A stretch of 63,647 nucleotides of DNA, counting the filler, from Klebsormidium nitens (Eukaryota > Plantae > Klebsormidiophyceae), in assembly GCA_000708835.1 (NCBI GenBank). It is 10 parts of 10 records of this genome, joined end to end, with 100 filler letters (N's around TTAATTAATTAA, not from the genome) between each part and the next. Parts side by side here need not be neighbours in the genome. Positions count along the whole stretch, not along the records: positions 1 to 11,960 come from DF238109.1; 9 more parts are not named here. One strand, written 5' to 3'. A program made the position numbers and the translations under genes. The notes below the pieces were generated by a model. It made no database searches, was not told where the DNA came from, and worked only from the letters and a program-made list of their open reading frames with translations. This document shows, one piece after another, positions 1 through 11,960 of the stretch (positions are counted from its first letter, which is position 1; the number at the start of each line of letters is the position of its first letter).

Positions 1-2880
1 CACAAAAAAAAAAAAAACCAAAGATCCTTCACACATATACCCCAGAATCGACTCGACAGCAAAAAGGCGCTCGATTTGAACCTGCCGGCCCCTCAGGTAC
101 TTCCTGCTGGCCCTATCATGGCTACCTCTGACGTGTAATTTGCTGCTGTGCTGCTCTAATCTTACCAGCTACCTCAGTTCAGGATGCGAGGCTAATGTTC
201 TCAAATGGCAGGAAGTGCAGCCCGACCTTAAGAGATGTGAGCTCTCTGCCGTGATTGGAAAGGAGGAGACCTCTGGCTTGCCAAGTCCCCCCACCAATCA
301 GTGTCCCTGCAGATCAAACCAAAGCTCACAATCTAAAGGAAGGTGTCCCTCTGCAAAGACCTCAAACTGCTTGAGAACCAAGGCACACTTAATCTGCATC
401 AGACTGGTAAAGCTTCACATTGGTAAGAAGAGTTTTACGCAAGCACAACAAAGACAGCTACAAGAGAGAGTCAAGAGGGCCTGGAAACCCCCTTGGCCAC
501 CTCCATTACTGGTCCAATCTCCCTCTCTGACCTATGCTTTACCCAACTGTAGATCAAATCACACAATCCTGAGGTCTCCAAGGAAGCTCACCCAAGCGGC
601 CACCGAAGCTCCTGAAGGCAATCCAGGCACCCCGAGATTCCTAAGGTTAGTCTTTATGTTTTGTTAGAAGTAATGAAAGGCTGCACTCTAGAGAATCCAG
701 ATTTCACTCAATTAGGTGCTTGGATTAACCAGGACCCCCAATGTCAGATTCATGGACTAGCCACAATGCAGGAAGGAGACAGGAAAGACAACCCCACTGG
801 TCTGCACAAATGTAATGATTCTGAATTTAGGATCAGTCCAGGGAATCTGTCCAAGATGATGAGTCCCAAAAACATGCTGCCAGACCCGAGGCTGAAGCTG
901 CTTTATGATACAGCACAACAAATAAGGAAGGTCAGACTTTTCTGTAGGCGAGAGTGCTCACAACTTGGACATCAGGGCAGACCTAAGACCAAGAAGAGTG
1001 GTGCTACTAGAAGTCAAAACCCAGGAAACCCTGCAGTGCAACACACGTCCCCAAAAGTCCTGAAGAATGCTGCAATGACAACAAGTCAAGTAATACTGAC
1101 CGCATTTGCTTTCCCGGAATGTCAGACCAAGTATGCAGACATACCTGGCCGGCTTAATCTAATCATGCAAATGCCAGCAACTCTCTCACCAATACTGCTT
1201 TCGCGGGAGTGTTTCTCGACCACCCAGAAACAACCCAACAGCTGGAAGATAAAAAGTGCGGCACACTCTCTGCTCTGGAAATGCCAACACCCAGGATGGA
1301 TTAACCAGATTACAACAGAAACGCTGATGGCTGTGAAACTTTCCCCGTCCTTGCTGTTTGCCCAACCTCTGCTTGACAGGCAGGAAGGTCAAGCAATTTT
1401 TGCCCCAAGCCTCTACAGCCTGAATGTCTCTCTTCTTGCAGAATGCAGACATGACCGCCATGCCTCTCTAGTGCAGGAAAGAATTGCAAGAAAGGACCGG
1501 AAGGACCCCACCGCTACCACTGCCTTGGCTGAGAACCCCTCTTTCTCAAAGGTGCGTGCCCAAAACCAGGTTCTCCAAATAAAGATGTTCCACCTCTACA
1601 TCCAGAAGGATTCCACTGCCGTCCATGGATGTAAAAGTGAATATGCAAAGTCTGGACTTGAACGTTATCTGGTGGTATGGGCTTGGACTGAAATTAGAGA
1701 ACAGCCGACAGAGAGACTCCCCCTCGATGCTGTGCCTGCTCCCCCTCCTCAGGTTAGATCAGCAGATATGACAATTTTTGTGAATACGGACAGTATCATA
1801 ATGGACTGCTCTATTAGCCCAATTGAGCAATTGAGCAATGTCAACGCTAGAGGCCCCCACCAGGCTTACCCCCGGGACAGCAAAAGACCCAACTGTTCCT
1901 TTAGTAATATGTCAGGTGTCGGGCAACACAAATTGCACGATCCACTGGAACACCTGCAGATAAAATGTAAGTACAGATTGGCCCGGCCAAAAGGCAATCA
2001 AAACTTCAGCTGGTTCCTCACACACAGGGAAGGAGGGAATGGTGCTCGCCATAACACAGAGCTCACAAAGAAAGTCACAGTTATCCGGTGTCTGGGTTCT
2101 GGCACTGGCAGCCCCCTAAGCCACAGTCTCATCATGTGCCTCATCTCGGCCCTTACTCACAGGGAAGCCGTCACCACGGATGAAAAGCCTCCTCAACTTG
2201 AAACGCCGTCAAGACGCTGCCCCCTCCAAGAAAGCTCTCTCTTTCGACGAGACAGCAAACATGTCAGGGTAAGCCGTGACTTCCGGGGCCTCATTGCTGC
2301 AGTTAAACAGACACCCCCTTCCTCTTTGCGCGATGCTCAAATTTTGACGCTCAACCTAGTTCCCATCAGAAAAATTAGGACAACGGACAACAGTGATGGG
2401 CCCGTCACCTTGAGGTTTTCAGAACGGACCACTCTCTGTCTGTCAACTAAAGACGAACCAGATGCTAGGGTGGCCAAATGCGACAACAGGGGCCTTGCTA
2501 CTAGAGTGAAGCAGTTTCTGAGTACCTCTTACTGCGATACTCTTAGCCTGAAGCTAAACGTAGTCCCTCCTAGCGTAATTTGGTCAACGGCCAACAAGTC
2601 TAACGGGTCTGCCACCTTAAGGATAACAGCATGGACCAAGTTCTTTTCGTTAACGAATGGCCAAGCAGAATCTCGGGCGGCCGGATGCGACTACAGGGTT
2701 TCCGAAATGTCTCCTAAAGGTCCGCCTTCCCTCTCTGCGTTTACTGGTTCAAAGACCGACCACCCTGGCGGTACTTTGCCACTCAGGCTCCCTCCTCCTT
2801 GTTGCAGGGTCACAAACCTTATTACTGGGGGCTTAGCTGGCCTTTCCCCGTTCAAGGGGAAAAAGGAGCTCCCCTCTGCC

Positions 2881-5800
2881 ATGGAGACCGACCAGAAGGG
2901 CCCCACACTTGCGGAACTCTTCCAGGACGCCAAGGACGAGTCCGAGCTGCCCTCGGGAGGCCCCCCCTACAAGAATCCGGATCCCCTCCCCTGCGCAGTC
3001 GACGAGCTCATAGAGGCATCCGACCGCCTGCGCGAGATGGCAAAGAAGCTGGCCCCCACGATCGCCATCGAGGCCATGATGGACGCACTCGGCTCCGCCT
3101 ACGGGGGCTGTGTACTGGACGCCAGCCTGAAGAGCACAATCCGGGTAAGAGTCAGCTTAAAACCGCTTGCTCGAAGCCACAGTAAATTCCTACCTGATAA
3201 GCAAACCTGTAAATTTGAAAGAGTGGTTTCCGGTAGAAACCCTTCCGGTTGTGAGGCAAACCGGCGTAAGCCCTTCCCAGATAAGGAAACTGGAAAGTCC
3301 CTTTTAATTGGGTTTACTGGAAGGGAGCCGCCTTATTGTGAGGCAGAAAAAGTAAGATCCGTAAGGAACGTAACTGACAATTCTGATTGGAAACGAGAAC
3401 AGTCTGCAAAACTGGAAGATCTTATAGAAAAGGTAACAAAGACCAGACACCTAAATGCTAGCGCCTCCTCTCTCCTCTGTACATGTAAAGGGGGGGAGCT
3501 ACCATTAGACAAGTCTAAGAAAATTGGAAACACACACAAGGGCAATGGTAATGCGCGCAGCTGCAATGACTCGGGTCACTTGAGAAGTCTCCAAGGGTCC
3601 GGCGAGGGATGCCCTCAGCTAGTTCCCATTTCCGCCCGACCTTCAACCAGACAGCCACAACGGAAACTGAGAAACCAATATAACTTGCATGGTCTCCTTC
3701 TTGTCTCTCTGCAGATTGGACACATCTACAGCGTCGCGGACATCCCGGGCACAAAGGAGAAGGTGATGGTGGTGGACATCTTCGCCTGCAACCCCAAGCT
3801 CGCGGGCAAGAAGGCCGCAAAAGTCATGAGCAACATTGGCGTCATCAGGGTGGCCGTTGAGGACGCGCTTGCCGAGATCGACCCCGAGGACCAACCCCTA
3901 TGCGCGGCCCTACTGGCATCAAACATCGACCAGACCATCAACAAGGACAGCCCGGTGAAGGCGTGGGAGACGCGGTTCCATGCGGAGGCCCCGACCCAAG
4001 CCCTAGCGGCCCCCCCGCCCCTCAGCAGCAGCCGGACCCCCTCCCCAGACTTCATCATCGACCTGGTGGGGCTAGAGGAGACGATGATCCTGAGCTACAC
4101 CTACATGCAGGACGTCACAGCGGAGGATTTCCAGCGCATGACCACTCCGCCGCTGGAGGAGGTCAAGGGGTTCGTGAGCGCTGAGGACCTACCAGCCTCA
4201 GAGGGCCAGTCCGTGGGCAACATTCGCCTCGTCTGGGAGGACTACACGGTGAGATTGCTGTTCAACAATAGTCTTTGGACAGTCCAGAATTTTAGAGAAA
4301 GGCGCTCCACAGGAGAAGCCCGTACTTATGCCGCTACCAACATCTGCTACATGATTGCAAACCGTCGTCTTGCGTCTGTCCTACGAGTTGTTAGGTTTGT
4401 AAATCTTGAAAGACAAAGAGTGATTTGCAGAGGAAAGGTTGCAGACGGACAGAGTTTGATAGAAAGAAGTCTCCCAAAACACCAACAGGAGACACCAGCG
4501 ACAATCCGCCTCGTTGTACTAACCTCCGTTCTGCTAACCTCCAAGAGCGACATTAGCAGAACGCGCCTTTGGGAAAGCCGGACACAATCCATCCAGCAGA
4601 ATCGACAACTAACAGAGGAAAATCAATTCACTGTTTCCTCCCCACAGGCCCAAATTACAGGCGCCGCCGTCATCAAGAAGGAGTACAGCGTCCGCCCAGC
4701 TCAGCACAAGTTCGAGGAGGACGTGTTTTTGGTACAAGACAACCATGACGATCAACGGAGGGACCCTCACCGAGGCGAACGTCACCGCCCTGCAGCAGCT
4801 GATCCGCGAGCGCACCAAGGACCGCGGGGCGCAGCTGATCCTGCTCACCGACCGGAGGGGCCCTCCCAAGCTGCAGCTCACAATCTCGGAAGCAGACACG
4901 TACTTCAAGATCGATCAGGAGAAGATCAGCGCGGTAAGAATCGCCATGGCAATTAGCACTAGAAACCTGCAAAGGGATGCCCACCTACCTAGCAAAGAAC
5001 CAATACAGACCTTAAATACCCTCAGTCGAATCCCTTGTCTTTGCCTCTATGCTAGCTCACCCGATCAATTAGTTGGCCTGAAGAAACAGAGACAAGTCAA
5101 GTACACCTTAACGAAACAAGCCCGGAACCGCCTTTCGAATGAAGCCAGCAGCACCGACGCACACTCATCTCTCTCCTACAGAGAAAGACGTGCTGACGGC
5201 CAGTCCATGATCGTTTATACTCAAACTCCTACATCAAGGAAAAACAGCACCTTCATGATCACAACACCCCCCTCTTCACAGGTACTCGACGACGGCAAGA
5301 CCTGGGTCCTCAAACCGCCGCGCGCAGAGCTGGGCCCCATCTTCAACGACCCCATGGCGCTCATCATCGAGAGCAAAGTCTTCCCGGGCCACATCAAATC
5401 GGCGGATGTCCTCCGGGCCCTGCTACAGGCAGGCGCACCCCCCGAGACCACGGTCGACTACGTTTCTGTGGGCCGCGGCCGGCGTTTCTTCTTGGTGCAG
5501 ATTTTCAAGCCTCAGCTCTCGGCCAAGTTCTGGGTTGGCGGCCTGGAGATGGGCTACGGCAAGGTTGTACCGGTGGAGCTGGCCTACCTGTGGAAAAGCG
5601 ACGTGCTCCGAAGCCTGATCCCAAACCTCTCACAGGAGAAGGCCTACGATGCAGTGGTGAAGCAGAACCCCCGCCTGCTCAGCAGCATCATGGCTGCGAA
5701 GGACGCGCTCAGGGCAGCCGCCAAGGGTGCCCAAGGCGCGGTAAGTCCCCCTTCACTGCTCCTCATGCAAGAGAAAAACGGTCCCCCCCCAGCACCAAGT

Positions 5801-6456
5801 CGCCCGCCCTCAAGACAACCGGGCGTGCACTCGTTTTGCAATGATGGTCATGACGCAACACTCAGGGTGATCTCCCAGGCAGGATACTGCTTCAAAATAG
5901 TTTGCTCTTCTTATCCCCAAGAAGCCTCAGCCAGCAGGTCAAGTGCTGCTGGATATGTGATTGTCGCTCATGCTACTGCAAGATTCCCGGGAAATAATCA
6001 CAGCTCACACGGGTATCGATCTGTCCAATGCGCAGGAGGGGCCAGCCGAGAAGAAGCCGAGGCACATGAAGGCGTACCAATCCCTCACATTCAAGTAGAG
6101 ACGGTGAGACAGGTAGGCACACTAATGTCGGAGACAGGAAGTAGAGAACCAAGGTTGCTATTGCTAGGGAGCAGAGAGCCAAGGTTGTTGTCGCTAGGGA
6201 GCGTCCTCCAGTCAAATATGGATGCCTTGCAACCAACTGCATTGCCAGGGTCGTTCTCGGCCCGCCCAAGAGACACATTACTCCTCCCTCCTCTAGCTAG
6301 CAGCCCCAGAGAGCTCGAGACAAACCACCAAACACCCACATCAGCTTCACCGCAGAGGAATGCTTTTACCCACATCCGTCCACTAACAGCATGGCAGATT
6401 CCCGCCAGAAGCAGAAGCACTATTACTGACCCCCCCTTTCTCTGCTCCAGGCTTAA
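2881..6456 (+). CDS. Predicted spliced ORF1 protein of the LINE (~515 aa). Exons 2881-3144, 3715-4248, 4648-4933 (one extra T), 5282-5740, 6451-6456
   Basis: ATG in GCCATGG context. Donors CGG|GTAAGA 3145, ACG|GTGAGA 4249, GCG|GTAAGA 4934, GCG|GTAAGT 5741. Acceptors TCTCTCTGCAG 3714, TTTCCTCCCCACAG 4647, CCTCTTCACAG 5281, CTGAC..TTTCTCTGCTCCAG 6450. Exons are GC-rich with C/G-ending codons while introns are A/C-rich. The last acceptor is uncertain (alternative at 5921). Confidence 0.72.
6137..6202 (+). repeat. In-frame ~30-nt tandem duplication (GSREPRLLLL/GSREPRLLSL/GS)
   Basis: ggaagtagagaaccaaggttgctattgcta followed by gggagcagagagccaaggttgttgtcgcta. Confidence 0.8.
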
Positions 6457-7423
6457 CCGGGACGGACCGCAACTGGGTCGAACCCCAACGGCAGGAACCA
6501 GAAAGGCAGCGTTGTGGAAACAGAAGCTAGATTCAAAGCAGAAAATAGTGTCAGAGAACTCCGCTGCAACTCAAATGATTTGGGATGCCCTGTGCATGAG
6601 TGTGCACATCATCTTGCTATTTTCACCCATCACCGGTTGCCTACATCTCAAACTAACGAACAAAAAACATATGCTATCACTAAAACAAATTGTTGCACTG
6701 CACATCGGCATGTCTAAATGGAAAGTACGACGACCCCTTAGAGCCTCATACAACAAATATATAGCAATGACCTGCAATCGTAATCGAATCCGGCATCTCA
6801 TGCTCCTTGCCATGCTCTGCGCCGTGTATATGCTGCATGTCGACCCTCATAAGGCGTGTCATCCGAGCCTCTTCACGTCATTACTAGCCAATAGAAGAGG
6901 ACTAAAACGAGATCGCCGCAAAGTGAAACTGAACAGCCAGGAACGACTCATAATAAAAGGCATTGAGCAGTCATTGCAGACATCAATAGATCATGCAACG
7001 GCGACATACATGCACCTGAAAAACTACTTCCTCCTCACAGACCACGACGAGTGGACGACATACATGTGGGCTTGCAGATTAGGCCCGATGAGCATACTTC
7101 TCCTATACCAACGAATAACCCACATGAGCATCGGCATACGCATCCTACTATCCCTAAACTTGGTACTAATACTGGATCCAATACAACGAGTCGCAAATGA
7201 CTACACATGCACCGTGCTCGATAGACTGTACACTAAAGTCCCCCTTATCAGAACAACCATATTAGGCTTGGACACTATAATTACACTAAGCGTCTTCAAA
7301 TCCATCTTGACGCTTAAACGAACTACCGACCGACTGTTCGGCTGTCAAAGCCCCTGCGACACACAGACCCAAAGCGCGGGACACCTCACCAACCAAATAC
7401 TATCGTGCGCATCCGACTTCGTA

Positions 7424-7495
7424 AACTTCATATCAGCATACCTTCTCGCCATTCTGCTGCTCAAAGGTGGAGACATTCACCCAAATCCCGGACCA
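7424..7495 (+). other. 2A-like (StopGo) ribosome-skipping peptide ...AYLLAILLLKGGDIHPNPG|P
   Basis: GDIHPNPGP is encoded at 7469-7495, after a hydrophobic helix and ~28 codons before the APE domain. It matches the D(V/I)xxNPGP form found upstream of APE in several LINE clades. Confidence 0.75.
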
Positions 7496-7579
7496 GTGCT
7501 AACGCCACAAGAAAATCACACAGCGTCAAAACCCGTCGGCGCACATGAAACCAACAATATAGAAAGAAACGACAACTTG

Positions 7580-8410
7580 CGGATCTTAAACTGCAACTGC
7601 CGGGGCATAGACAACAAGATCCAGTACTTACCAGAGTTTCTAAAACAACACAACATACACGTTGCCATCATAACTGAAACCCAACGGTCAGTCGGAAAAC
7701 ACAAAAATCAAACGACGCAACGACTACAAGGCTACACATTTCACTTCAGCTCTTATGTAGATCCAACCTTCAGTGCACATCTCCTTCCTCGTCACGCCAG
7801 GGAATGGGGCGTCTGCATTGCCATAAAGGACGGCCTCCCTTTCGAACCCCTCCAACTTCATATTCCAGAGTTCCAATCCCGAGTGCTGCAGGGCACCCTC
7901 CGCATTCCAACAAGCGGGGATAAATTATTGTCTATAGAGATACTAGGAGTATATGCGCCTGCAAAAGAACAAGACAAGGAAGTTTTCTGGAAAACGCTGA
8001 CTGACCACGTACGAGGCACTGCAAAACGAGCTGAAAAGTCTGCAGATCACCACATGATACTCGGCGGAGACTGGAATAGCTACCTACACCCTACAACCGA
8101 TATCTTTCGGCGGGAAGCTGACACCAACTCCCCCACCCCCACTAACACGGACACAGATCCCACGAAAGGCCGCCACCTGCGCAAATTAGTAAACGACCTT
8201 CGCTCAAGCGGCACCTTCATCTTCGATCCAATAGCTAAAGAGGGGCTACAAGCAGACGAAGACTATACCTTTCTTTCCAGCAACCACCGTTTTCAATCCA
8301 TCCTTGACAAGATTTTCACAACGTTCCCCACTGAACATTGCGAAAAAACACAGATCCTAGACTGGCACTCATACACTAGAATTGGACTATCAGACCATCG
8401 AGCAGTAATC
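7580..8410 (+). CDS. Apurinic/apyrimidinic endonuclease (APE/EEP) domain of the LINE polyprotein
   Basis: Motifs NCNCRG, TETQ, VYAP, GDWN, LDKIF, SDH in canonical order. Confidence 0.92.
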
Positions 8411-9399
8411 AATGAAATCAGCTTGAGTTCACTGTGCGAAGGTTGGATTGAGTACCCAACTGAGCCGTTCAAACTCCCACCTAGAATAGACTTATCAAAT
8501 CTTTCCGAAAAGACAATTGAAAATCTACAAGAAGCAGTTGAAGAATGGAAAAAGAACCTACCGGAACAAATTGCTGACATTCTCCTTCCCAATCCCAAGC
8601 AGCCTGCCCAAGATAATACTGCATCTGTGGACAAAGAAACCATGTTAGCCTTGCACAAACACCTGATCAACCTCTTTGTTGACATTCCAGCCAGACTCAC
8701 TCAGCAAACCCATAAAAAATCTCGAAAGAAATACAAATCAAAAGAAGCAGGCTTTGCGCAACACGTACTGACCTGGCTCAAGAGATATAAAGTGACTCTA
8801 AGCGCACTAAACGACTGCAAGACTTTGAACATAAAGAGTCTAGGAAAGAACCAAAGACAGAGAACTCGACAGACATACGAGGACTTTCAAGACGAACCCC
8901 GCCTGCAGTCGGCTCTCCCCGAGATCACCGAACTCTTGCCTCAAGATCTCGAAAAATGGACCACACAGGAATGGCTACGGCACTGGAATACGGTTGGAGA
9001 CCTGCACCGGAAGTGGAAAAGACAATTTGACCAAGACCTTCACGAATCAAATAAAAAAGCAAGAAAGAAGCGCACCGACGAAGTCTTCAGTGCTCCAGTA
9101 AACTCAAAAACGAGAAGAGCCTATCACCTGGCACACAAAAACGTCTTTACTTCCCTTCCAAGTGTCATGAAACACCCCTCACAATCAGATACACTAATTA
9201 CTGGCCATGCTGTAAATGAATATTGGGGAAGCTCAGCAACTGCAACTAGACCAAACACGATGCCACACGTACCAACAGAGAAAGGCACACCGCCTTGGCT
9301 CGCCCCCCAGCTATGGTCAGAAACTAGAGAGAAAATCTCGGTCATGGAAGAATCTCTACTGGCCCCGTTGTCCATTGAAGAAGTGCGCTCCTTCCTCCA

Positions 9400-10400
9400 G
9401 CATACTGGCCGTTCAGCCCCTGGCGATGACCGAATTCAATATGACGTACTAAAATACATGTGTGTTGGAAAGACGCTAAAGGAGAGCCAACTAGACGACG
9501 TCCTTCTGCGCTTTTCAAATACCCTACTAAATCAAAGACAAATGCCTGATACCATGAAAACAGCAATGCTCACCTTCATTTTCAAAGCAGGCGACCCCCT
9601 GCAATACGGCAACTATAGAGGCATAAGTCTTCTCAGCTGCTCGTTCAAGATACTCACTGGCACACTGAATGGAAGACTTCAACACATCCTCCATGAGAAG
9701 GCGGGCCCGGACACAAATCAAGGCGCAAATCGCAAAGGAGTACACGCAGCGCACAAAGCAGCAGTAGTTTTTGATATAATTGCAGACGCTCAACAGCACC
9801 AGAAACCCCTTCACATGATCTTCACAGATATCAAAGGAGCTTTCCCAAGCGTTCCATACCAAGCTTTTGACGACGCTCTGTCCACCAGAGGCCTAAACCA
9901 TGGGTTTTTGGACCTCGTAAAGGACACCCAAAATAACTTCACCTGCGTGGCAAAAGGCCCAACAGGCTTGTCGACCCCGAAAGCAAAAGAAAACGGCGTC
10001 CATGAGGGAGACTGTCTTAGCCCAACCCTATTCTGCCTCGTACTCAACATGTTCTTTCACTGGTGCCGTGCAGAGGGCCTCGGTTACGAGATGACAAGCC
10101 ACCCATTGTCACCAGCAAGACTCTCGATTAAGATTCCGGTTAACGGTTACGCAGATGACATGGCTCTCATTGGCAATTCACGGGAGGAAGCTGTCAAACT
10201 ACTAGAAATGCTACAGCGCTTTTTGCTCTACTACGGGATGGAACTCAACGCAGGAAAATGCGCATACCAGTACTTAGTCCAAGAACCAAAAGACGAACCT
10301 GAATCTATATCATGCACATGGGGCACAATTCCTACCTACCATGGCAAGAAATCCTACAAATACTTGGGCTACCACATTAACACTCACCTGAATTTAGACC
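9400..10400 (+). CDS. Non-LTR reverse transcriptase domain
   Basis: SAPGDDRI, NYRGISLL, NQG, DIKGAFPSV, EGDCLSP, GYADD, KCAY, YKYLG. Confidence 0.95.
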
Positions 10401-11389
10401 ATCAGCATGAAGCTATGCTGATCAAACTCAATGACGCGTGCATCGAGTACTACAACCGGCAAACAAACGCCATGTCTCTGCAAGAGGCAATCAATTATGT
10501 GAACTCTGACATCGTTTCCAAACTGAGATATCGCATGTACCTGATCGATTTCCCCAACAGCTACCTGGAAAAGTTTGAAGTGGCCATAGTCCGGACGGTG
10601 AAGAACCTGGCGAGACTTGCAAAATCAACTCCTAACGACCTGCTGATCGATCAAGGACTGTGCAACGTGTTCAACTTGCAAGCCGCAGTCCGAGCCGAGT
10701 TCACACAAAACGCCCTTCTCGCAGTGGATATGCCCTGCCAAACAACAACGCGCATCACATACACAAACCTCCGACACGGCGGCGAGCTAAGAGGCACCGA
10801 ACCCTTCTCCAAAGAGGGATGCCAAATGCCATGGTCGGATAAGAAAGCCCCTCCCATCTTCCAAGGAGTTCGAAAACACCTAAACAAAGTAAAAATGTCC
10901 TTTATAGTTGGCTTCGATACACAAATCAACACTCACAGTCGCCATGTTCAAGACACGCTCATACCGCTCGCACACCGATACAAAACAACGCTGTGGTTGC
11001 ACTGGGGAGTCACAGACATTACACTCTCTAGGCTACTCCAAAGCCTTAAGCGAGCCAACATCTTCTCCCTAGACGAAATCTCCCCTCTCTTTGAATCCCC
11101 ACTCTCAGAACTGAAAAATGGTACTGCAAGAGAGACATGGGAATTACAGAAGGGCCGAGAAGTTCACTCCCCAGAAACAATCATCCGGAACAGCTGCCCT
11201 CCGAAACTTCTCGACGTACTGCACAAAGACCTGAAAGCACTAGGCATGGCTCGAACACATGCTCGCCTGCTAAGAATCTTGGTCAGACTGCTAATCGAAC
11301 ACCTACTTGAACCCTTTGCACCATCTGCCCCAAGTGCACACAATGAGAGCAATTCCCATTGGGGGCTCTTTCAGAAGCACTCTCTACCA

Positions 11390-11850
11390 GTCACTGTTGC
11401 CTACCCCGACGGCAGTGTGTCAAAAGACAAATCTAGAGCAGGCTTTGGCCTATACCTTCCGGAACTGGAGGACCACAATACAGCCGTCCTCAAATCTAGA
11501 ATCCCAGGCAACCAAACAATTGAACGAGCAGAAGCCTTTGGGGTACTGGCAGCACTTCTCCTAGCAAGGCAAGACAAAAACCTATCGATACACTGCGACA
11601 GGGAACCTCTGGTGAAGAGCATCAACAAATTCAAGAACAGAAGTCCCCTCCCGCATGAAATCAGGAAACTCAAGGACTCCTCACTTATCCTTAGAATCAC
11701 TCAAGAAATCCGCTCCAGATCAGGGGCAACGACAATTACCCATGTAAAGGCACACCAACAAAAAAAGCAAAGAAAAGCGGCCACAGACACAGAACGACAC
11801 CAATCCTGCAACCAAGTTGCAGATCAGGCGGCAAAAGCGAGCCTGCAAAA
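11390..11850 (+). CDS. RNase H (RNase H1-like) domain
   Basis: AYPDGS, PGNQTIERAE, IHCD, THVKAH, NQVADQAAK: the D-E-D-H-D catalytic set. Confidence 0.9.
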
Positions 11851-11960
11851 TCAAACCCCCTTCATCCCAGACGAAACAACACACCTCCCTGCCGTAACAA
11901 TACTCACGGCCAACAGTTGGTTATCTGAAGGACCGAAACACATTTTCGAAAACAGTCCCC

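Follow-up and report, generated by a model that had tools for sequence, protein, structure and literature searches.

The window analyzed here is a stretch of 63,647 nucleotides (nt), filler included, of Klebsormidium nitens DNA (assembly GCA_000708835.1). Its first piece, positions 1-11,960, is one entire scaffold, DF238109.1, and holds on its plus strand one long interspersed nuclear element (LINE), the subject of this study, in which introns that are open in the local reading frame lie upstream of the reverse transcriptase (RT). Coordinates without a locus label refer to this window copy. From 5′ to 3′ the element consists of the exons of open reading frame 1 (ORF1), a conserved “pre-2A” region, a 2A-like peptide, and AP endonuclease (APE), RT, and RNase H domains (Table 1). 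In a stop map, frame 1 is stop-free at 616-4953, with its next stop at 4954 within intron 3, frame 2 stays open from 4613 until the scaffold ends at 11960, and frame 3 of the plus strand contains 195 stops. Pfam placed APE, RT, and RNase H all in frame 2 and, because these domains are found there with the 2A-like motif upstream of APE, the element is an APE-type LINE; the succession of APE and a LINE-type RT within one ORF, by which LINEs are recognized, is seen as PF03372 and PF00078 sharing the open frame. The element does not qualify as Penelope-like, since no GIY-YIG domain was found by Pfam and APE with a LINE-type RVT_1 is present instead.

Searches with ORF2 and with the spliced ORF1 protein (ORF1p) recovered a small family of relatives, from K. 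nitens and from related algae represented by contigs in JGI and Logan data. These are L001 (Logan), whose RT is 67% identical to that of the window copy; L002 and L003 (one JGI sample, RT 78% identical); L007, on a second K. nitens scaffold, DF238174.1 (62.5%); L008/L009 (JGI), an internally deleted copy; and L010/L011 (JGI), a decayed copy with 72-83% nt identity. RVT_3 was detected in the window copy, and zf-RVT and RNase_H in the relatives. In the ORFs past RNase H of L001, L002, and L003, Pfam found an OTU domain and no restriction-like endonuclease; because the latter does not accompany APE in these three relatives (the 3′ end of the window copy is missing), the element is not assigned to Dualen/RandI.

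Exons and introns of ORF1

The blocks at 2881-3144, 3715-4248, 4648-4933, and 5282-5740 have a GC content of 0.61-0.65, against 0.47-0.54 in the spacers, and are bounded by the donors GTAAGA, GTGAGA, GTAAGA, and GTAAGT and by acceptors composed of a pyrimidine tract followed by CAG. An initial annotation made from the sequence alone had described four GC-rich blocks with strong GT-AG edges, and both the composition and the splice motifs are as it described them. Codon-position composition separates the same segments: GC at third positions (GC3) is 0.80-0.85 with low GC2 in the exons, GC is flat at 0.43-0.52 across all three positions in the spacers and the upstream region, and APE and RT show low GC2 with GC3 near 0.5. 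The ATG at 2881 is internal to exon 1, which really begins at the conserved acceptor 2807|2808. Introns 1-3 have the sequence features of exitrons, namely canonical splice sites, lengths that are multiples of three (3n), no in-frame stop, and coding flanks. Their lengths and local openness had been described correctly in the initial annotation, but it missed a change of frame inside exon 3.

Frame 1 is the reading frame of exons 1 and 2, whereas exon 4 uses frame 2, and the high GC3 moves from the former frame to the latter at about 4700. The relatives read ...RPAQH(K/R)FEE(D/Q)VFW.K... across this site within a single frame, and L010 is one base shorter at the T5 run, 4726-4730. The extra T is, as judged from these copies, a 1-nt insertion specific to the window copy; without it, a single frame would be open for about 11.3 kb, and with it the reading is divided between frames 1 and 2. 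A programmed +1 frameshift at the T5 run was set aside because all five relatives are in frame and no slow-codon context is evident, which makes a copy-specific insertion the simpler explanation.

The NCBI gene model KFL_011600010 (“hypothetical protein, partial,” 704 amino acids [aa]) covers the same region with exons at 554-646, 1381-1629, 2165-2269, 2809-3144, 3715-4248, 4661-4933, 5282-5740, and 6036-6095, followed by a stop. It agrees with the junctions of introns 1, 3, and 4 and, for the acceptor of intron 2, takes the second AG, at 4659-4660; this site lies 13 nt further 3′, and its use offsets the extra T and restores the frame. Its second exon (exon B, 1381-1629), which is not conserved with L010, was treated as probably spurious. 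Gene predictors render such LINEs as ordinary multi-exon host genes, as in KFL_011600010. Four sequencing runs were compared with 700-6650. A DNA run showed no differences and no joints over this region, and a contig from run X6, which is only guessed to be RNA, maps to 4024-4181, inside exon 2. No RNA contig in the four runs lies on any intron, and the only junction seen is that of intron 4. Pfam scans of the ORF1 exons, the introns, the upstream region, and the pre-2A region returned nothing significant.

Table 1. Features of the window copy of the LINE on DF238109.1 (GC1, GC2, and GC3: GC at first, second, and third codon positions; RRM, RNA recognition motif)
Feature	Coordinates	Strand	Remarks
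Conserved 5′ block	61-540	+	70% nt identity to L010 8160-8627, flanks unalignable; short matches at L002 330-380 and L003 777-842
Hypervariable region	616-2162	+	Stop-free in frame 1, first in-frame ATG at 673; flat GC1/GC2/GC3; not alignable to L010
Exon C	2163-2268	+	Frame 2, ATG at 2180; 75-82% identity to L010; in NCBI gene model; homologue at L002 2026-2100
Intron C	2269-2807	+	539 nt, 3n+2, open in frame 1; donor GTAAG puts TAA in the exon C frame
ORF1 exon 1	2808-3144	+	GC3 0.80; homologous to L002 2809-3135; acceptor kept in L010
Intron 1	3145-3714	+	570 nt, phase 0, 3n, 0 frame-1 stops; 423 nt in L002, 411 nt in L003
ORF1 exon 2	3715-4248	+	GC3 0.85; 31% aa identity to L002
Intron 2	4249-4647	+	399 nt, phase 0, 3n, 0 frame-1 stops; 375 nt in L002 and L003
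ORF1 exon 3	4648-4933	+	286 nt; first RRM-like fold; copy-specific extra T in T5 run
Intron 3	4934-5281	+	348 nt, phase 0, 3n, 0 frame-2 stops
ORF1 exon 4	5282-5740	+	GC3 0.82; second RRM-like fold and helices; 41-60% aa identity to L002, L003, L007, and L008
Intron 4 (switch intron)	5741-6035	+	295 nt, 3n+1, open in frame 2; in spliced contig and NCBI model
Exon 5	6036-6098	+	20-codon tail EGPAEKKPRHMKAYQSLTFK and stop at 6096, in frame 3 only once spliced
Conserved pre-2A coding region	6488-7420	+	40% aa identity over 315 aa to L002, E 1e-61
2A-like (StopGo) peptide ...LLLKGGDIHPNPGP	7433-7495	+	Directly 5′ of APE
AP endonuclease domain	7589-8305	+	Pfam PF03372, E 2e-06
Reverse transcriptase domain	9605-10378	+	Pfam PF00078, E 1e-25
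RNase H-like domain (RVT_3)	11408-11665	+	Pfam PF13456, E 1.7e-05; open frame leaves the scaffold at 11960

Conservation of the switch intron and of open introns in relatives

A contig from run X6 joins 5740 to 6036, so that a 295-nt stretch bounded by GT and AG is missing; the DNA run does not contain this joint, which falls exactly on the predicted donor and matches KFL_011600010. For this fourth intron the initial annotation was right about the donor, about the open unspliced frame, and about the break of frame on splicing, but the acceptor is 6035|6036 rather than one ending at 6450 or 5921; likewise, the RNA junction that it suggested looking for was seen on the donor side, with the acceptor at 6036 and not at 6451 or 5922. 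The length of intron 4 is 3n+1 in all four loci where it could be compared (229 nt in both L002 and L003 and 250 nt in L007). Splicing brings a short tail peptide with a stop into frame: EGPAEKKPRHMKAYQSLTFK in the window copy (6036), EEPEEKKPKHLNFN in L002 (5774), EEPEEKKPKRLNFN in L003 (7433), and EEPEEKKPKRLTFNN in L007 (1743). Each of the four tails directly follows a pyrimidine tract with CAG and is read in frame +1 when exon 4 is taken as the reference. The bases of exon 5 are also open in unspliced frame 2, and over 19 codons the ratio of nonsynonymous to synonymous substitution rates (dN/dS) is 0.22 in frame 3, the spliced frame, versus 2.0 in frame 2. Because a conserved peptide and stop can be read only after removal of a 3n+1 intron, there is strong evolutionary evidence that the intron 4 splice is functional.

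A nonconserved open spacer, 6099-6487, lies 3′ of exon 5, and the succession of exon 4, intron 4, exon 5, spacer, pre-2A region, and 2A-like peptide forms a continuous open frame in the window copy, L002, and L007. The pre-2A region can be reached in frame only from RNA that keeps intron 4. It is rather hydrophobic, is 40% identical to its counterparts in L002 and L003, and contains no known domain according to Pfam and the ESM Atlas; it was not detected in L007, where exon 4 and the 2A-like peptide are only about 0.8 kb apart.

Exons 1-4 are recognizable in the relatives at 31-60% aa identity, and every boundary in L002, L003, L007, L008, and L010 retains a donor and a CAG acceptor in phase 0, the donors being GTAAG or GTGAG. 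The donor of intron 1 is a GC donor, CAG|GCAAGT, in L002 (3145), L003 (4836), and L010 (~10928), where the window copy has CGG|GTAAGA. The lengths of introns 1-3 vary among lineages, for example 348, 312, 290, 243, and 351 nt for intron 3 in the window copy, L002, L003, L007, and L008, respectively, and are always 3n except for intron 3 of L003 (a 22-nt deletion). In L002, the exons, the pre-2A region, and APE share one frame, open at 1450-8307 with a single stop. Across the non-exon segments of five lineages, only 2 of 3244 in-frame codons are stops, where ~161 were expected from the off-frame rate of 4.95% in the same segments (P ~4e-68; L002 and L003 are not mutually independent). In the window copy, 616-2808 holds 0 stops in 731 frame-1 codons versus 40 and 42 in the other frames. 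The openness that the initial annotation judged to be beyond chance is indeed far beyond it, and it extends further than was noted there, over 616-4953 and 4613-11960.

Where exons are 75-78% identical in nt sequence (L002/L007 and the window copy/L008), the introns align barely or no better than shuffled sequence, and tblastn of the peptides encoded by the introns and by the upstream region found no matches in the relatives. Between the window copy and L010, which are close enough for the introns to be aligned, identity is 81-83% in exons and 61-73% in introns, and the indels in introns and spacers measure 3, 87, 3, 3, 15, 15, 1, 27, 51, and 30 nt, nine of the ten being multiples of three (3, 87, and 3 nt in intron 1; 3, 15, and 15 nt in intron 2). 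In this pair, the open frame of the introns gives a dN/dS that is not reduced relative to the other frames; the decay of L010 and the lowering of dS by codon bias in the exons make the comparison too noisy for a clean separation of exons and introns. Since stops and non-3n indels are rare while neither the intron sequence nor the encoded peptides are conserved, selection acts on the preservation of an open frame (“no stop, keep frame”) rather than on which amino acids are encoded. The decayed copies L003 and L010 carry stops and non-3n indels alike in exons, ORF2, and introns, as is expected after insertion. Intron positions have thus stayed fixed through a complete turnover of the sequence, and the sequence-level predictions of the initial annotation, namely that introns of other copies and relatives would keep 3n indels and no stops with relaxed amino acid conservation, came out as expected. 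The distant L005 (RT 52% identity) has the 2A-like motif and long open frames upstream; no ORF1 exons are recognizable in that locus, so the age of the arrangement cannot be traced further back.

These data also bear on a reading without functional introns, in which the element encodes a giant protein, the AT-richer stretches are fast-evolving disordered linkers, and the splice signals are coincidental or noise. In its favor, one frame stays open through all segments, none of the copies seen lacks the introns, the gene model may be wholly ab initio, and splicing is supported at the RNA level by a single low-depth contig. In all five lineages, however, each boundary has kept its donor or acceptor motif, although the sequence in between has become unalignable, and the linkers show neither a codon-position signal nor frame-specific constraint. 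Moreover, the giant protein leaves unexplained the exon 5 tail and stop, which are kept in a frame accessible only by splicing a 3n+1 intron, and the exact coincidence of the spliced contig with the predicted donor. We consider the giant protein very improbable.

L002 and L003 share 96% identity across 12.2 kb, end in tails of A12 and A18, respectively, and then continue into unrelated sequence; they are separate insertions of the LINE, and both keep introns C and 1-4. The poly(A) tails and differing flanks expected of a non-LTR retrotransposon are thus visible in these two loci, whereas the window scaffold ends inside ORF2. Precise intron loss, which the initial annotation named as evidence that would speak against its interpretation, was found in none of the examined loci covering these introns.

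Ten proteins among 1.84 billion representative proteins match spliced ORF1p, on ORF1 exon segments, and all those fetched belong to copies of the LINE family. An origin of ORF1 by capture of a host gene was accordingly rejected, no host homologue having been found in that collection despite the host-like GC3 of the exons. A related proposal is that the ORF1 part is a host or domesticated gene beside, or fused to, an immobile LINE fragment, as might be suggested by the contrast between the host-like exon GC3 of 0.80-0.85 and the ORF2 value of ~0.5 and by the DNA run, which shows ordinary contig depth and no variants. Yet the order of exons, introns, 2A, APE, and RT is repeated on six or more contigs that differ in their flanks, among them decayed copies and the two poly(A)-tailed ones, the ORF1 exons lead to RT in a continuous frame, and no homologue was found outside this arrangement among the proteins searched. 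An immobile host gene is, in our judgment, an extremely remote explanation.

The nature of ORF1p was approached by structure prediction. AlphaFold (AF2) with an 11-row alignment gave two beta-alpha-beta-beta-alpha-beta units in exons 3-4 followed by helices, at a predicted local distance difference test score (pLDDT) of 62, and the top matches of this model to the PDB in Foldseek are all tandem-RRM proteins (NONO/PSPC1/SFPQ, HuR, and hnRNP A1) with probabilities of 0.9-0.98 and a template modeling (TM) score of ~0.25, the latter being low because domain orientations differ. ORF1p is therefore likely an RNA-binding protein with a tandem-RRM fold, as far as the model can tell. A single-sequence AF2 prediction of spliced ORF1p was unusable (pLDDT 34), the ESM Atlas gave weak RRM-like structure matches alone, Pfam found no match to ORF1p at the sequence level, and a PDB profile search with exons 3-4 gave no real match.

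Proposed translation of retained introns and the start of the polyprotein

We think it likely that this intron-retaining LINE produces either ORF1p or a polyprotein depending on splicing and that the retained introns are translated. Fully spliced RNA would yield ORF1p only, as the removal of intron 4 (3n+1) shifts the frame into the tail exon and its stop. Unspliced RNA would be at once the template for reverse transcription and the mRNA for the polyprotein, on which ribosomes pass through exons and introns alike to the pre-2A region; the 2A-like peptide might then free the upstream product, and the ribosome would proceed into APE-RT-RNase H, followed by OTU in the relatives. The share of RNA that escapes splicing would fix the ORF1p:ORF2p ratio. 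The introns themselves survive retrotransposition, and introns 1-3 behave like exitrons. It is also reasonably probable that the lineage as such uses host splicing to control the output of ORF1p and ORF2p and that 2A and perhaps OTU resolve a polyprotein whose reading frame exceeds 3,700 codons. The same division of labor, with ORF1p alone from spliced RNA and an unspliced RNA open down to APE-RT-RNase H, had been suggested in the initial annotation. The sequence supports it once the coordinates are corrected, the anatomy, its conservation, one splice junction, and the kept introns of separate insertions being observed; translation across the introns, 2A activity, the start codon on unspliced RNA, and the escape of that RNA from splicing are the conjectural steps. 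The scheme needs in addition the 2A-like peptide in front of APE. The ~515 aa proposed there for ORF1p have to be replaced by probably ~584-588 aa, counted from a start codon in exon C, which lies with intron C further upstream.

The 2A-like motif of the window copy, GDIHPNPGP, has His where the canonical D(V/I)ExNPGP has Glu. A text search of the literature for HPNPGP returned one mycovirus paper only. The motif is kept in L005, in L007, and in L001, where it occurs twice in tandem, as the canonical GDIERNPGP and as GDIHPNPGP (1778 and 1907). At the corresponding site, L002 (7108) and L003 (8762) have NPGQ, which is expected to disable skipping. An OTU-like cysteine protease/deubiquitinase domain follows RNase H in L003 (13565-15376), L001 (6551-8326), and L002 (12782-13912); it might process the polyprotein, and the window scaffold ends before that region.

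How translation of the two RNA forms begins depends on the upstream region. Exon C probably carries the start codon of ORF1p, ATG 2180. Its changes relative to L010 are mainly at third positions of frame 2, and its CAG acceptor and GT(A/G)AG donor are kept. The counterpart of intron C is 347 nt long (3n+2) in L010 and 690 nt (3n), in frame, in L002, where the exon C homologue is in frame with everything downstream; in L002, therefore, one ATG can serve both RNA forms. In the lineage of the window copy and L010, the long frame cannot begin at 2180 because intron C is 3n+2 and its donor gives an in-frame stop.

Several observations weigh against translation through the introns. No read or peptide shows intron sequence being translated. 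The RNA support is one contig of depth 2.1, with 21 nt on the short side of the joint, from a run presumed to be RNA, and the junctions of intron C and introns 1-3 rest on the gene model and conservation. In the window copy, the extra T in exon 3 breaks the single frame, and the Glu of the 2A motif is replaced by His in the putative 2A peptide DIHPNPGP; L002 and L003 carry NPGQ. Furthermore, ATG 2180 of the window lineage does not share the frame of the long open stretch, so that the polyprotein must start elsewhere in this lineage, for example at ATG 673, which itself follows several upstream ATGs.

Some of these points would be accommodated if the introns are real and retained, and ORF2 is nevertheless translated by internal initiation or reinitiation, for instance from an ATG located within or 3′ of the pre-2A region. 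Some other benefit would then have kept the introns stop-free and 3n, such as shielding the unspliced genomic RNA from nonsense-mediated decay during translation of an ORF1-intron fusion. The disagreement between the frame-1 and ORF1p starts in the window lineage and the many ATGs before 673 agree with internal initiation, as do the NPGQ at the 2A site of two relatives and the fact that, in the window copy, the frame is broken in exon 3 and yet frame 2, which has an ATG at 4745, remains open over 7.3 kb. Internal initiation, however, would not need the open frame that runs from exon 4 to the 2A-like peptide in the window copy, L002, and L007. A conserved 2A-like peptide before APE is sensible only if translation comes from upstream, and avoidance of nonsense-mediated decay would itself need translation through the introns. 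We thus regard internal initiation as unlikely and prefer translation through the retained introns.

Relation to known retroelements and further observations

The Arabidopsis element EVD makes a spliced, gag-only subgenomic RNA. Gag-only mRNA produced by splicing is likewise known in other copia-type long terminal repeat (LTR) elements, namely Drosophila copia and barley BARE (PMC3735527). The likeness of these Ty1/copia systems to the K. nitens LINE is that spliced RNA gives a structural or RNA-binding protein, unspliced RNA is both the mRNA of the RT polyprotein and the template, and the efficiency of splicing sets the ratio. They differ in being LTR elements with a single intron that removes most of pol, whereas the LINE has at least five introns inside ORF1, all but the last in frame and stop-free, and a 3n+1 switch into a tail exon.

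Exitrons are exonic introns of plants and animals, 3n in length, stop-free, and flanked by coding sequence; they belong to host genes and usually arose from what had been coding exons. Introns 1-3 of the LINE resemble them in keeping the frame both when spliced and when retained, but the LINE needs the retained form to reach the downstream RT, and its introns lack amino acid constraint.

Plant-type L1 LINEs, as Smyshlyaev et al. in 2013 and Khazina and Weichenrieder in 2009 are said to have described, have RNase H and an RRM-containing ORF1p. The K. nitens element, compared with them by domains alone, resembles them in the order APE, RT, zf-RVT, and RNase H (RVT_3) and in the poly(A) tail, with zf-RVT and the tail seen in its relatives, and in a predicted RRM-fold ORF1p. 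To our knowledge, the known members of that group have separate and intron-less ORF1 and ORF2; the K. nitens LINE differs in the introns of its ORF1 and in the frame that runs into ORF2.

2A peptides are found at the N terminus of ORF2p in APE-type LINEs of the L1Tc/Ingi, CR1, L2, Crack, and Rex1 groups (PMC3708506), and algal LINE ORF2p with 2A-like peptides and deubiquitinase domains has been described (bioRxiv 10.64898/2026.06.17.732966). The present element is like these in having NPGP directly 5′ of APE in what is effectively one long ORF, with an OTU deubiquitinase-type domain in its relatives; it is unlike them in its predicted variant DIHPNPGP and in the ~6.8 kb of exons, in-frame introns, and pre-2A region upstream. 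Introns are not mentioned in the texts of these two reports as searched.

Intron retention in Penelope-like elements has been called “highly unusual among retroelements” (PMC8557442). These elements and the LINE have in common that a retroelement keeps spliceosomal introns through retrotransposition. Penelope-like elements, however, have a telomerase-like RT and GIY-YIG, and their introns are mostly in the 5′ untranslated region, with no in-frame read-through role described (PMC8557442), in contrast to the APE, LINE-type RT, and RNase H of the K. nitens element.

LINEs copy their own RNA and are therefore expected to lose introns, which makes those found here unexpected. In the literature searched, from which most subscription journals were outside the scope, we found no LINE with conserved in-frame, stop-free introns or with a splice-dependent switch between ORF1p and polyprotein, and the statement of the initial annotation that no such arrangement was known agrees with this incomplete library. 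If the proposed mechanism is true, no LINE before this one would have been shown to translate its retained introns, and the mechanism would represent a new route to much ORF1p and little ORF2p from one transcript, in parallel with copia, BARE, and retroviruses. It would also account for the 2A peptide in front of APE, and the element might serve as a natural model of how an RNA avoids both splicing and retention in the nucleus and of purely “syntactic” selection on sequence.

As for the region upstream of ORF1, the conserved 5′ block is probably a promoter, a leader, or a first exon. A six-codon upstream ORF at 118-135 (ATG GCT ACC TCT GAC GTG TAA) and its surroundings are conserved in L010 (~8215-8235) and L002 (330-380). 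The scaffold starts with CAC(A)14CC at 1-20, ~40 nt before homology to other copies begins (~61), and this A-rich start may be the poly(A) tail of a neighboring LINE copy or an A-rich target site. The hypervariable region would be intron-like in a spliced mRNA. The counterparts of 541-2162 in L002 (557-1868) and L003 (879-3559) are mutually unalignable, though these copies are 96% identical elsewhere, and the stretch from the 5′ block to the ATG exon measures 1.3 kb in the former and 2.7 kb in the latter.

A search of Rfam gave 0 matches over the whole window at E up to 1, including no hepatitis delta virus (HDV)-like ribozyme or other known RNA, and a search for direct and inverted repeats found nothing that accounts for the introns. 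Short tandem repeats occur within open non-exon sequence, a 30-nt unit present twice at 6136-6195 and a ~150-nt unit in intron C of L002 (L002 2178-2507). The L010 copy lies in a repeat-rich region, as Ty3/gypsy-type RT_RNaseH, integrase, and capsid domains flank it (L010 1344-3759 and 16169-16939). In the internally deleted copy L008, and identically in L009, the exon 4 donor and a 36-nt GT..AG remnant (L008 1255-1290) are fused in frame to mid-ORF2 (~9155 of the window copy); this copy, present in two JGI samples, is without exon 5, the pre-2A region, 2A, and APE, and its frame 1 is open at 85-2067.

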